Shown in pieces: positions 6,490 to 10,377 of a stretch of 64,000 nt of DNA. Numbering within the stretch: the first letter of the stretch is position 1; the number at the start of each line of letters is the position of its first letter. Below the pieces are notes generated by a model, which was given only the letters and a program-made list of their open reading frames with translations, was not told where the DNA came from and ran no database searches. Location: NCBI RefSeq assembly GCF_000009045.1, contig NC_000964.3:3286001-3350000 (forward strand), given 5' to 3'. Both the position numbers and the translations under genes were made by a program. The stretch comes from Bacillus subtilis subsp. subtilis str. 168. GTDB lineage: Bacteria > Bacillota > Bacilli > Bacillales > Bacillaceae.

Positions 6490-7359
6490 TCAGCCCATTG
6501 ATAGATGCGGTCCGTCAGGGTGAAGCGCAAAACGCAGCGCCCTGCTGACCAAAACAGGAAGAACTGAAATATGTCCTTCTCCTGAAAACTCGCAAAATTC
6601 TGCCCGTATACCTTGTTCAGATAAAACGGCCAGCCGCTCATAAAGCTCCCTTGCATTATCATTCATCCGGCTTTTATGATGCTGCTCTAATTCTCCTGCG
6701 GCAAGCAGGATATTGATAGGCTGATTGTTTTTCTTGGTGAGAGAGACGAAATGGTCCGTTTTCTTGAGAATAAACGGTTTATTCCAATGAATGGACGGAC
6801 TTCCCGCGATATACGTTTGAAACGCATCGGGCTTTGTTAGCAGCACCTGCAGCACGAAAAGCCCTCCGAGCGAATGGCCAAAGATTGTTTGTCTTTTTTT
6901 ATCAATCTGGTAATCTCGTTCTATCTCCGGTTTTAAATCCTCTTCAATAAATCTGAAAAAGCCCTCCGCTCCGCCATGCTCCGGCCATTCTCTGCCGTCG
7001 GGCCTTTCCGGCAGCTTCGATTGGGCTGTTGGCATTGTAAAATCCCGGTGGCGTGCTGAGGAGAACGGCTCCGCTGTCTCATAGCCAATGCCGACGATCA
7101 CTGCAGGGATCACCCCGGTTTTTTCGGGTCGGCGTCCCTGTATTCGAACGGCTTCCGTCATCGTTCCGAAGACAGAATTGGCATCCAGCAGATAAATCAC
7201 AGGATAACCAGCGGGTGGCGGCGGCGTACTAGGTTTCGAGATAAAAATGTGATAGGTACGGTTTTCATTGCGTGAAGACATCATACGCACTTCCGTACCA
7301 GGAATCGTAAATGCGTTTGATGTCCCGCCATTTGTCCGGTCTGTTGTTTGTTCTTTCAT
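6490..7359 (-). CDS. besA: Ferri-bacillibactin esterase (alpha/beta hydrolase, 289 aa)
   Basis: GHSLGG nucleophile elbow and C-terminal EGH; Fur box upstream. Start uncertain (7359 or 7371). Confidence 0.92.
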   Translation of the reverse strand: MKEQTTDRTNGGTSNAFTIPGTEVRMMSSRNENRTYHIFISKPSTPPPPAGYPVIYLLDANSVFGTMTEAVRIQGRRPEKTGVIPAVIVGIGYETAEPFSSARHRDFTMPTAQSKLPERPDGREWPEHGGAEGFFRFIEEDLKPEIERDYQIDKKRQTIFGHSLGGLFVLQVLLTKPDAFQTYIAGSPSIHWNKPFILKKTDHFVSLTKKNNQPINILLAAGELEQHHKSRMNDNARELYERLAVLSEQGIRAEFCEFSGEGHISVLPVLVSRALRFALHPDGPHLSMG

Positions 7360-7400
7360 GCAGTACGACATTCCTCTCCTTAAACTAAACCGCAATGTAT

Positions 7401-7419
7401 GATAATGATTTTCACTATC
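7401..7419 (-). promoter_or_regulatory. Fur box for besA
   Basis: Minus strand GATAGTGAAAATCATTATC, 2 mismatches to consensus. Confidence 0.85.
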
Positions 7420-7434
7420 AACTAGACACCTCAA

Positions 7435-7463: not shown

Positions 7464-7572
7464 CTTTTTCCCGAATAAAAAAGGCACCTTGATCAAATAA
7501 GGTACCTGCAGACTATCAATATGGAAGTAAAAACCTAATAAAGATGCGTATTGTCCTATTTGAAATAGAACC

Positions 7573-8169
7573 TTAATCCCATGTAAACCTTTGATTTTGC
7601 CAAGGGTCGCCTCTCATGTGATAGCCATTCCGCTCCCAAAAGCCAGGGTGATTTTCTTTCGTAAATTGGATGCCGCGCAGCCACTTGGCGCTTTTCCAAA
7701 AATACAGATGCGGAAATACACCCCGCAGCGGAAAGCCGTGTTCAGGGGTTAAAGGTTCGCCATTATGCGCATAAGCCAGAAGGGAAGTTTCCGCTAAGAA
7801 ATCATCAAGCGGCAGATTGGTCGTCCAGCCCTCTTCAGCATGTAAAATGACGTAGCCCGCTTCTTCTTTTACACCCGCTTTTTCCGCTATATCACAAGCC
7901 CGCACGCCTTGCCACACATTATCAAGCCTTGACCATCCCGTGACGCAATGAATGTCGTTTTTCGATTCATACCGTGGAAAGGCTTTGACATCTTCAAAGC
8001 TTAGCAGCATCGGATGGTCAACCAAACCGTATACTTGAAGATTCCATTTCGTCATATCTTCGTAATATGGGACATCTCCGGTATGAAGCACAGGAAATGA
8101 AGTGGTGACGTTTTGATTTGGCGGCACTCTTCCAGATTGATCGGACTGTCTTGTTTTTCCGAAATACAT
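7573..8169 (-). CDS. yuiH: Sulfite-oxidase-family (MsrP/YedY-like) molybdopterin-binding oxidoreductase, no signal peptide
   Basis: DIHCVTGWS (Mo-ligand Cys75), HGFPLR, KSAKWL; AGGAGG RBS. Confidence 0.88.
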   Translation of the reverse strand: MYFGKTRQSDQSGRVPPNQNVTTSFPVLHTGDVPYYEDMTKWNLQVYGLVDHPMLLSFEDVKAFPRYESKNDIHCVTGWSRLDNVWQGVRACDIAEKAGVKEEAGYVILHAEEGWTTNLPLDDFLAETSLLAYAHNGEPLTPEHGFPLRGVFPHLYFWKSAKWLRGIQFTKENHPGFWERNGYHMRGDPWQNQRFTWD

Positions 8170-8182
8170 ATGGGCCTCCTTT

Positions 8183-8213
8183 TTGTTAACCTAATTTAAA
8201 ATCATGTTGACAA
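8183..8213. promoter_or_regulatory. BirA (biotin repressor) operator between yuiH and bioY
   Basis: TTGTTAAC-15 nt-GTTGACAA matches the Firmicute BirA palindrome (TGTtAAC-N14/15-GTTaACA). The right half overlaps a -35 TTGACA of a TTGACA-17-TACTCT promoter (8207-8235) facing bioY. Confidence 0.85.
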
Positions 8214-8269
8214 TCTTTTTGTTCTTTATTACTCTATGATTGTGTATGTCAACCTAAGGGGGAACAACG

Positions 8270-8872
8270 ATGAAACAACGTAAACTTCGTGCGGGAGATA
8301 TGGCGCTGATTGGCATGTTCGCCGCACTTATGGCTGTCGGGGCCAACATTACATCAGTAGCACCCTTTTTACAAGTAGCCGGCATTCCGCTTTCGATGCA
8401 GCCGTTTTTCTGTCTCTTGGCAGCTTTGCTTCTTGGCAGCAAACGGGCAGCGATTGCCATGATTGTATATGCACTTGTGGGATTGGCCGGAGCGCCTGTG
8501 TTTGCTCAATTTTCAGCAGGCTTCGCACCGTTTGCAGGGAAAAGCGGCGGGTTTATTATCTCATACATTCCGGCAGCATTTGCAGCGGGATGGTTTTTAG
8601 AACGAAACATTCAGCCAAGTAAAATTCGATTTCTCATTGCTTCACTTATCGGAACGGCGATCATGTATCTCATCGGCACTACCTATATGTATCTTGCACT
8701 GAAGCTGTGGATTCATACGCCAGTGAGCTACGGCACGGCTTGGGGCTTTATGATTTGGTTTATGGTAAAAGATACAGCGCTGGCTGTGATACTGTCGTTT
8801 ATCGCACCAGCAATCTACCGCTCTATTCATAAAGCAACCGGCTTTAACAGAAATCACATATCATCTACGTAA
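8270..8872 (+). CDS. bioY: Biotin ECF transporter S-component BioY
   Basis: Hydrophobic 200 aa with GLAGAPVFAQFSAG and GGFI motifs; BirA site upstream. Confidence 0.92.
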   Translation: MKQRKLRAGDMALIGMFAALMAVGANITSVAPFLQVAGIPLSMQPFFCLLAALLLGSKRAAIAMIVYALVGLAGAPVFAQFSAGFAPFAGKSGGFIISYIPAAFAAGWFLERNIQPSKIRFLIASLIGTAIMYLIGTTYMYLALKLWIHTPVSYGTAWGFMIWFMVKDTALAVILSFIAPAIYRSIHKATGFNRNHISST

Positions 8873-8941: not shown

Positions 8942-10270
8942 CTATAAAACAAGCGCTGCAATCCAGCCAAAGATGACAAGCGGAATATTATAAAATATAA
9001 ATGTCGGCACACAAGTATCCCAAATGTGGTGATGCTGGCCGTCCGCACTCAAACCTGAAGTCGGCCCAAGCGTACTGTCACTGGCAGGTGAACCGGCATC
9101 GCCAAGCGCAGCAGCAGCCCCGATAATCGCAATCGTTGCCATCGGGCTGAATCCAAGCTGCATGCATAGAGGCACGAAAATGGTTGTGATAACAGGAATG
9201 GTCGCAAAAGAAGATCCGATCCCCATTGTAATTAATAAGCCGACAATGAGCATCAGCAATGCGCCCAAGGACTGACTGTGTCCGATAAAACCAGCTGACG
9301 TTTTGACCAGTGACTCGACATCTCCGGTTTTCGTCAATACGTTTGAAAATCCGGCTGCAACAAGCATGACAAAGCCGATAAAGGCCATTAAAACCATTCC
9401 ATCAGTAATCAGTGAGTCCGCTTCATCACGCTTCATCACACCGCTGACAAACAGAACAATCAGACCAGCGAGCGCCCCCATAATCATTCCTTCTACTCCC
9501 AAAGTCTGAGATAAGTAAAGCTGGACGCCGAGTGACACAACAATGGCTAGAACCGCGATACCAATACTTTTTCTCGTATATGGCGATGCTTCTGCACCTG
9601 AAATGTCTTTTGTTTCATATTGTTTCGGTTTACGGTATACGATCACTGATAAAATAAGGCCGACAACCATACCTGCAACTGGAATAATCAGTGCGTACGG
9701 AATATCAGCAAGCGGAACGTTTAACCCGGCATCCGCCATATTGTCCTTCAGCATGCCTTGGAAGATTTGGCCGAAACCGACCGGAAGCAAAATATAAGGA
9801 GCCGTTAAGCCAAATGTAATTACACACGCGATCAGACGGCGGTCCATTTCAAGTTCATTAAAGATTTTCAAAAGCGGCGGAATCAGCACCGGGATAAACG
9901 CGATGTGAACCGGAACGACGTTTTGCGAAAAACAAGATACAATTAAAATAATCAGCACAATCAGCACCTTAGACAGTGCTTTTTTTCGAGAATCTTCTTT
10001 ATTTCCGATTAATTTAACGGAGGCTTCCACCATTGCGTCCGGAAGACCCGTTTTCGTCAAAGCGGCGGCAAACGCGCCAAGCATGGCATAGCTAACTGCA
10101 ACGGTGGCATTTCCGCCGAGACCGTCTGTGAAAGCTTTAACCGTTTCGCCAAGACCGAGCCCGCCTGTTAACCCGCCGGCCAAGGCGCCTATAATTAATG
10201 CGATAACAATATTGACACGCAGCAGGCTTAATACAAGCATAAGCAGGACTGCGATGACGACTGCATTCAT
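8942..10270 (-). CDS. yuiF: Amino-acid permease, NhaC-like/YuiF family (442 aa; recalled as a histidine transporter)
   Basis: Polytopic membrane protein with MGIGSSFATIP and GDAGSPASDS motifs. Start trimmed to MNAVV behind GGAGG. Confidence 0.85.
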   Translation of the reverse strand: MNAVVIAVLLMLVLSLLRVNIVIALIIGALAGGLTGGLGLGETVKAFTDGLGGNATVAVSYAMLGAFAAALTKTGLPDAMVEASVKLIGNKEDSRKKALSKVLIVLIILIVSCFSQNVVPVHIAFIPVLIPPLLKIFNELEMDRRLIACVITFGLTAPYILLPVGFGQIFQGMLKDNMADAGLNVPLADIPYALIIPVAGMVVGLILSVIVYRKPKQYETKDISGAEASPYTRKSIGIAVLAIVVSLGVQLYLSQTLGVEGMIMGALAGLIVLFVSGVMKRDEADSLITDGMVLMAFIGFVMLVAAGFSNVLTKTGDVESLVKTSAGFIGHSQSLGALLMLIVGLLITMGIGSSFATIPVITTIFVPLCMQLGFSPMATIAIIGAAAALGDAGSPASDSTLGPTSGLSADGQHHHIWDTCVPTFIFYNIPLVIFGWIAALVL

Positions 10271-10377
10271 GATGATACCCCTCCAAAAATCCTTTAGTTT
10301 GCTAATGTAGTAGATAAATAAAGTACGAACGTATCGTATCATAACCGATCCACTTTAGTCAACTAAAGATTTCGGAA

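Follow-up and report, generated by a model that had tools for sequence, protein, structure and literature searches.

In Escherichia coli, a single BirA operator, bioO, governs the divergent promoters of bioA and bioBFCD. The BirA operators of Bacillus subtilis belong to bioWAFDBI, yhfU and yuiG. In this study, the last of these sites and its surroundings were analyzed in a stretch of 64,000 nucleotides of the B. subtilis subsp. subtilis str. 168 chromosome (positions 3286001-3350000, in the following called the window), while genome-wide scans covered one contig of 4,215,606 bp. The operator is located between bioYB (yuiG), which encodes a BioY-family S component of a biotin energy-coupling factor (ECF) transporter, and yuiH, a separate, strongly conserved and divergently oriented gene for a cytoplasmic, single-domain molybdoenzyme of the sulfite oxidase (SUOX) fold. 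An initial annotation of the window had suggested that YuiH reduces biotin sulfoxide and is co-regulated with biotin uptake. Our data make it rather probable that the proximity of the known bioYB operator and yuiH reflects a lineage-specific gene order and that gating of yuiH by BirA is incidental.

With the described B. subtilis operators, the site in the window shares the repeat TGTTAAC-N-GTTGACA and the overlap with the -35 region of a transporter gene; it is the yuiG operator itself. As far as bioYB is concerned, there is no difference, but the literature searched is silent on the position of this site, 2 nt from the ribosome binding site of the divergent yuiH. Like bioO, it is a single BirA site between divergent genes, at which one dimer could shut both directions. 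However, both E. coli units are biotin genes and biotin-responsive, whereas for yuiH the available data reveal neither a response nor a recognisable promoter. MsrP (YedY), a methionine sulfoxide reductase of the SUOX family, has the same fold as YuiH (template modelling (TM) score of 0.69 to 1xdq), the pattern C-V-x-x-W-S around the molybdenum-ligand cysteine and 25% identity over 157 residues. By contrast, MsrP is a periplasmic protein of 334 residues, while YuiH has 198 residues, no twin-arginine translocation (Tat) signal, no MsrQ in the genome and a score of 55.8 bits with the MsrP equivalog NF003767, far below the cut-off of 207. BisC, which reduces biotin sulfoxide and free methionine-S-sulfoxide and belongs to the dimethyl sulfoxide (DMSO) reductase family, is a cytoplasmic molybdoenzyme as well and would share a substrate with YuiH only if YuiH acted on biotin sulfoxide; its fold is unrelated and its cofactor is bis-molybdopterin guanine dinucleotide (bis-MGD).

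The BirA operator and its two sides

The features of the intergenic region and the two adjoining genes are:

8183-8213, no strand: BirA operator of bioYB, TTGTTAAC-N15-GTTGACAA (direct reading, pattern scans, published mobility shift, conservation)
8207-8235, plus strand: predicted bioYB promoter, -35 TTGACA at 8207-8212, 17-nt spacer, -10 TACTCT at 8230-8235 (from conservation)
8270-8872, plus strand: bioYB (yuiG), BioY-family S component of the biotin ECF transporter (Pfam PF02632, 6.7e-32)
8175-8180, minus strand: Shine-Dalgarno sequence AGGAGG of yuiH, separated by 5 nt from the ATG at 8169-8167 (direct reading)
7573-8169, minus strand: yuiH coding sequence, 198 amino acids (open reading frame; Pfam PF00174, Oxidored_molyb, 2.7e-42)
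8247-8252, minus strand: TTGACA hexamer facing yuiH, for which an 18-nt spacer would give a -10 of TAAAGA, without the final T (direct reading)

The half-sites of the operator, TTGTTAAC at 8183-8190 and GTTGACAA at 8206-8213, are separated by 15 nt. A search for Bacillus-type operators, defined as an inverted repeat of TGTWAAC and GTTWACA with a spacer of 14-16 nt, gave this site as the only match in the window and none in 100 shuffles. With a stricter core pattern, three matches were obtained in the 4.2-Mb genome, among them the site at 8183-8213 and one at 3095511, which we take to be the bioW operator. A looser pattern added a site at 1112544, presumably the yhfU operator, directly beside a yhfU-like BioY gene. 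The third strict match, at 2221496 outside the window, has a 16-nt spacer; for about 400 bp to its left and right, there is no open reading frame of more than 120 codons. Possibly, this match arose by chance.

BirA shifts a 125-bp yuiG fragment in electrophoretic mobility shift assays (EMSA) only when biotin and ATP are supplied (Henke & Cronan 2014, PMC4016012). The primers used for this fragment, SKH018/019, map to about 8138-8262, and both PMC4016012 and PMC6323116 count bioYB (yuiG) among the BirA targets. Since the assay covers exactly the fragment containing the palindrome, the latter is the already published yuiG operator and hence not new. The initial annotation had named it as a BirA operator covering the bioY -35, which is borne out on both counts by the pattern match, the EMSA and the position of TTGACA (8207-8212) within the right half-site. 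The operator overlaps a biotin transport gene's promoter and is conserved together with this gene, as expected for a BirA operator of the Bacillus type. BirA loaded with biotinyl-5'-AMP binds to the operator, covers the -35 region and thereby represses bioYB.

The putative bioYB promoter scored under the threshold of the consensus scan; in relatives, the initial T-A and the final T of the -10 are kept (TAnnCT). In ribosome profiling (Ribo-seq) data, 273 molecules start exactly at position 8252 of the plus strand, 18 nt ahead of the bioYB start codon, an ATG at 8270. This pile-up is either the edge of the footprint of initiating ribosomes or an mRNA 5' end, and in the latter case, the -10 of B. 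subtilis could be TATGAT (8235-8240) instead of TACTCT.

On the other side of the operator, only two bases separate it from the yuiH Shine-Dalgarno sequence. A similar purine-rich stretch is present at the equivalent position in 30 related intergenic regions, most of the regions read have the operator 2-8 nt from the yuiH ribosome binding site, and the distance between the operator end and the yuiH start codon is 14-25 nt in the 32 loci of the family with a recognised palindrome. The operator is thus placed as an element affecting yuiH transcription would be. The initial annotation had pointed out that the operator adjoins the AGGAGG of yuiH and that transcription towards yuiH has to start on it or cross it, with which the coordinates agree. 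RNA carrying the yuiH Shine-Dalgarno sequence has to start within the operator or to its right; therefore, bound BirA would occlude or block such RNA. Gating of yuiH by BirA is in this respect geometrically plausible, and from the geometry BirA probably blocks weak transcription entering yuiH.

A second TTGACA, at 8247-8252, had been described as facing yuiH. It is present but not conserved, as close relatives mostly possess TTTACA and more distant ones have lost it. A consensus scan of the yuiH strand of B. subtilis found no sigma-A-like promoter with at least 9 of 12 matching positions. The best candidates on this strand vary by genus, TTTACA-18-TAGACT in one and -10-like hexamers within the operator spacer in others. 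Inspection by eye for sporulation sigma consensus motifs gave no conserved match on the yuiH side.

Expression and conservation of the gene pair

The BRIC-21 RNA-seq list of significantly changed genes contains yhfS, yhfT, bioY (log2 3.8), yuiG (2.7) and besA (2.3), the esterase gene following yuiH, all of them up; according to text and Table 1 of the BRIC-21 paper, the bio biosynthetic genes rise as well. By contrast, yuiH (BSU32020) is absent from this differential list, though BSU32010 and BSU32030 are present. Because yuiH did not rise while the BirA regulon was derepressed, release of BirA is apparently insufficient and yuiH needs another signal. In a Ribo-seq run, of which about 6% was sampled, the sense depth was 9-376 over bioYB and 26-65 at the 5' end of besA, while it was 0 over yuiH from 7727 to 8214 and at most about 1 at the yuiH 3' end. 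If BirA was bound in this culture, whose medium is unspecified, a lack of yuiH footprints would agree with repression, so that the run alone is not decisive. In the summary that Henke & Cronan (PMC4016012) give of earlier biotin/BirA arrays, yuiG and yhfUTS are named as the only additional regulated transcripts, and yuiH is not among these targets. The proposed co-regulation of yuiH and bioY, and with it the assignment of yuiH to the biotin/BirA regulon, is thus at odds with the RNA-seq list, the footprints and this summary. Provisionally, on the two data sets at hand, yuiH does not respond to biotin or BirA along with the regulon.

The conservation of the pair was studied in 91 genomes of the same GTDB-level family. 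A YuiH ortholog (66-100% identity) occurs in 68 of them, and 21 gave no YuiH match at all. In all 68 yuiH-bearing genomes, a divergent bioYB ortholog is located about 100-130 bp from yuiH, as ascertained by tblastn at 35 loci and by coordinates for the rest; due to the kinship of the genomes, this figure reflects shared ancestry as much as selection. The intergenic regions examined have a fixed order: the yuiH start, the Shine-Dalgarno-like stretch, a few bases, the operator and TTGACA-17-TAnnCT for bioYB. At the stringency used, the palindrome was recognised upstream of bioYB in 32 of 37 yuiH-bearing loci of the family. An oddity was seen in the genome G039 (locus L003) of a very close relative, whose YuiH is 97% identical: the match to bioYB is split into two overlapping parts, separated by a TGA (bioY at about 801-1399), so that the gene is probably a frameshifted pseudogene, with yuiH and the operator intact.

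A bioYB-type gene is present in all 91 genomes, and the 21 Bacillus species devoid of yuiH have an ortholog at 57-64% identity. At each of nine yuiH-less loci examined, the operator and a TTGACA-17-TAATCT promoter are intact and start right after an unrelated upstream gene's terminator, and downstream yuiF remains in place. The operator goes with bioYB and not with yuiH, and yuiH is dispensable for both bioYB and the operator. The linkage of yuiH, bioY and operator across the Bacillaceae, a test of which the initial annotation had proposed, is consequently kept in one direction, in every yuiH carrier, but not in the other. Loss of molybdenum cofactor (Moco) synthesis was considered as the cause of yuiH absence in some Bacillus species. 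It is ruled out, since MoaC is encoded in 91 of 91 family genomes and yuiH was accordingly not lost together with this pathway.

Outside the family, other families of the class carry YuiH orthologs at 57-66% identity, and homologs at 35-60% are more widespread. Within 1.5-4 kb of 43 YuiH loci in these other families, neither a BioY gene nor an operator-like palindrome was found. Among 80 loci of a species collection, the yuiH-bioY pair with operator was detected in two, Metabacillus niabensis and Fictibacillus solisalsi, and was missing in the other 78. Taken together, none of 121 YuiH loci outside the clade (43 and 78) is near bioY or an operator. The linkage is confined to one family plus Fictibacillus; recurrence in independent lineages, which would speak for membership of yuiH in the regulon, was not found.

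In B. subtilis, open reading frames and Pfam matches give the gene order besA, yuiH, bioYB, yuiF and yuiE, and dhb genes precede besA. Flanking features are:

6490-7434, minus strand: besA, esterase gene (open reading frame and Pfam)
7482-7507, minus strand: terminator-like hairpin with T-run, 3' of yuiH (sequence scan)
8942-10342, minus strand: yuiF, Na_H_antiporter (open reading frame and Pfam)

Right behind the terminator hairpin of yuiH, a strong promoter-like sequence, TTGACT-17-TATTAT (7463-7435, minus strand), is located ahead of besA.

At three outgroup loci, yuiF and yuiH are direct co-directional neighbours with no bioY between them (L036, 217-2097; L037, 1498-3521; Pseudalkalibacillus hwajinpoensis L110, 2359-4597), and in P. 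hwajinpoensis yuiH is preceded by a good promoter, TTGAAT-16-TATAGT. In another large family, yuiH comes after a pepA-like gene and a CoA_binding_2 gene, the pepA label resting on likeness to the yuiE of the window and not on a profile scan. The simplest reading of the yuiF-yuiH adjacency in outgroups is an insertion of the bioY-operator cassette in an ancestor of Bacillaceae and Fictibacillus. The cassette would have separated yuiF from yuiH in a single ancestor and been passed on to its descendants, and the operator would lie beside the yuiH ribosome binding site as a side effect of its position.

YuiH and its enzyme family

YuiH matches PF00174 with 144.6 bits (cut-off 24), has no other Pfam domain in its 198 amino acids and is the sole product of a PF00174 gene in the whole genome. 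Its residue Cys75 aligns with residue 98 of the plant sulfite oxidase 1ogp, which we take to be the molybdenum-ligand cysteine, and with the cysteine of RMRCVEAWS in E. coli MsrP. In 16 aligned diverse homologs from the class Bacilli, Cys75 is invariant; altogether 38 positions do not vary over these sequences, D-x-H-C-V-T-x-W included. The N-terminus reveals neither a hydrophobic nor a twin-arginine signal in the sequence, and a gene of the MsrQ type (Ferric_reduct) was found nowhere in the genome. The description of YuiH as a protein that keeps the ligand cysteine and lacks both a Tat/Sec signal and an MsrQ-like partner was therefore correct, and it extends to the genome as a whole.

The AlphaFold2 model of YuiH (mean predicted local distance difference test score of 86.5) has the SUOX fold. 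Foldseek gave SorA (3.6e-15) and YedY (7.6e-14) as matches, and the model resembles SorA, YedY/MsrP, nitrate reductase and sulfite oxidase to much the same degree (TM score of about 0.7); no structure of the YuiH type was among the Foldseek matches. Compared to the NCBIfam cut-offs, YuiH remains low not only for MsrP but also for SoxC (68 of 420 bits), SorA (56 of 600) and SorT (27 of 570). In sulfite oxidases, the arginines of a GNRR motif after the cysteine bind sulfite. The residues following Cys75 in YuiH, VTGWS, match the MsrP type (VEAWS), unlike the sulfite-binding motif CAGNRR. These missing arginines, the scores under the cut-offs and the single Pfam domain, without the dimerisation domain of such proteins, distinguish YuiH from sulfite-oxidising enzymes. 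YuiH is therefore more likely to reduce neutral S- or N-oxides than to be a sulfite oxidase, and to judge from the MsrP-like motif without sulfite-binding arginines, YuiH is most likely a small-molecule S-oxide or N-oxide reductase.

The gene is under strong purifying selection (ratio of nonsynonymous to synonymous substitution rates, dN/dS, of 0.04-0.06), and the selection on bioYB is no stronger. Proteins of the YuiH type at 45-57% identity are found in Chloroflexota, Acidobacteriota, Gemmatimonadota, Actinomycetota, Bradyrhizobium, Rhizobium, Pseudomonas koreensis and several archaea. A conserved partner gene of YuiH across phyla was not detected; the neighbours are assorted transporters or housekeeping genes (FolD/CoaE, GltX, RluD, DNA ligase). 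In the literature searched, nothing gives yuiH a function or ties it to biotin or biotin sulfoxide, and the one trace of yuiH/BSU32020 itself is an uncharacterised entry of a Paenibacillus proteome.

A YuiH paralog of about 50% identity occurs in Paenibacillus, Mesobacillus and Neobacillus as part of an apparent operon, in which genes for a PnrA/Bmp-type binding protein, a double ABC ATPase, two BPD_transp_2 permeases, the YuiH-like protein and a PNP_UDP_1 phosphorylase follow each other. The operon was read at these loci:

L134, 1-5375
L142, 259-5327
L133, L145 and L159, further loci

This arrangement suggests that the substrate of the paralog branch is nucleoside- or base-related.

As to BisC, no B. 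subtilis protein reaches the bisC_fam cut-off of 1018 bits. Two proteins of 680 amino acids belong to the DMSO reductase family, at 4201691-4202896 (L194, 880-2919) and at 2025598-2026818 (L195, 1303-3345); by their map positions, we take them to be YyaE and YoaE. Their bisC_fam scores are 176 bits for the 4.20-Mb protein and 198 bits for the 2.03-Mb protein. Both are under every NCBIfam cut-off, with the best partial matches to the Fdh-alpha, DmsA/YnfE and bisC families. These two uncharacterised cytoplasmic MGD enzymes are equally open candidates for S- or N-oxide reduction in B. subtilis.

Possible roles of yuiH beside bioYB

We favor the view that the operator serves bioYB and that yuiH, an independent gene, came to lie next to it by gene order. 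Release of BirA alone would then leave yuiH off, and a further signal would be required for its expression. Several observations count against this view. By geometry, BirA occupancy must affect any transcript bearing the yuiH ribosome binding site. The pair is kept in all yuiH carriers of the family and in Fictibacillus, down to 62% identity of YuiH and 48% of BioY, a span over which the linkage to besA is lost; it is more persistent than many chance neighbours. Moreover, yuiH must be expressed in some condition because purifying selection on it is strong, and the expression evidence consists of one Ribo-seq sample, its medium unknown, and one RNA-seq contrast. Finally, an enzyme resembling sulfoxide reductases adjoins a biotin importer in a genome without a protein at bisC_fam level, so the chemistry fits.

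A less probable, though not far-fetched, explanation is that YuiH serves in general repair or detoxification by reducing some other oxidised small molecule and is induced independently of BirA by stress or during development. Free methionine sulfoxide and N-oxidised or N-hydroxylated purines and nucleosides are candidate substrates. The wide conservation from Bacillota, Chloroflexota and Acidobacteriota to Bradyrhizobium and archaea suggests a universal substrate, the position of the paralog between a PnrA/Bmp-type importer and a PNP_UDP_1 phosphorylase points to nucleosides, and a gene silent in the sampled laboratory condition yet under purifying selection would be expected. On the other hand, partner genes are not consistent across phyla, and the nucleoside context belongs to the paralog and not to the yuiH ortholog. 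Nevertheless, some other role in S- or N-oxide reduction is more likely than the reduction of biotin sulfoxide.

This latter possibility, under which YuiH would depend on Moco, reduce biotin sulfoxide in place of the non-homologous BisC, be co-repressed with bioYB via the shared operator and repair imported oxidised biotin when biotin is scarce, appears doubtful. It draws on the operator that abuts the yuiH Shine-Dalgarno sequence and covers the bioYB -35, on the layout found in 68 of 68 family genomes and Fictibacillus, on the MsrP-type cysteine motif of a cytoplasmic protein and on the genome lacking a BisC-level match. Bacterial salvage of biotin sulfoxide does exist, as BisC shows (PMC7759655). 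However, yuiH is missing from the changed genes of BRIC-21, when the whole BirA regulon was derepressed, nor is it among the additional array targets as summarised in PMC4016012, and most of yuiH was free of footprints while bioYB was translated. Furthermore, bioYB is kept in all 21 yuiH-less species, with the operator in the nine loci examined, the YuiH family extends to many phyla and archaea with no biotin genes nearby, and its paralogs are located in nucleoside-uptake operons. In an equally doubtful extension, YuiH would be the founder of cytoplasmic single-domain SUOX-fold sulfoxide reductases that was wired to BirA in the Bacillaceae as a biotin sulfoxide reductase acting with BioYB and needing a second signal; such a need would explain the silence of yuiH in the data seen.

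That YuiH oxidises sulfite, as a sulfite oxidase or dehydrogenase in keeping with its usual database name ('putative sulfite oxidase'), is very improbable: plant sulfite oxidase and SorA are among the best sequence and fold matches and SoxC is matched weakly in NCBIfam, but the scores are far under the SoxC, SorA and SorT cut-offs, the protein consists of a 198-amino-acid Moco domain with no haem partner noticed among the neighbouring genes, and its cysteine is followed by VTGWS as in MsrP, not by GNRR.

On present evidence, the operator is a textbook element with an unproven link to yuiH. The analysis contributes a clear map of the genomes in which the yuiH-bioYB linkage holds and of those in which it does not. 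A role of YuiH in the repair of biotin sulfoxide is a long shot. If true, it would assign a function to a family of proteins that reaches from Bacillus to archaea and has no characterised member in the literature searched, it would constitute a second, unrelated type of enzyme for biotin repair, and it would enlarge a BirA regulon that is small in this model organism.

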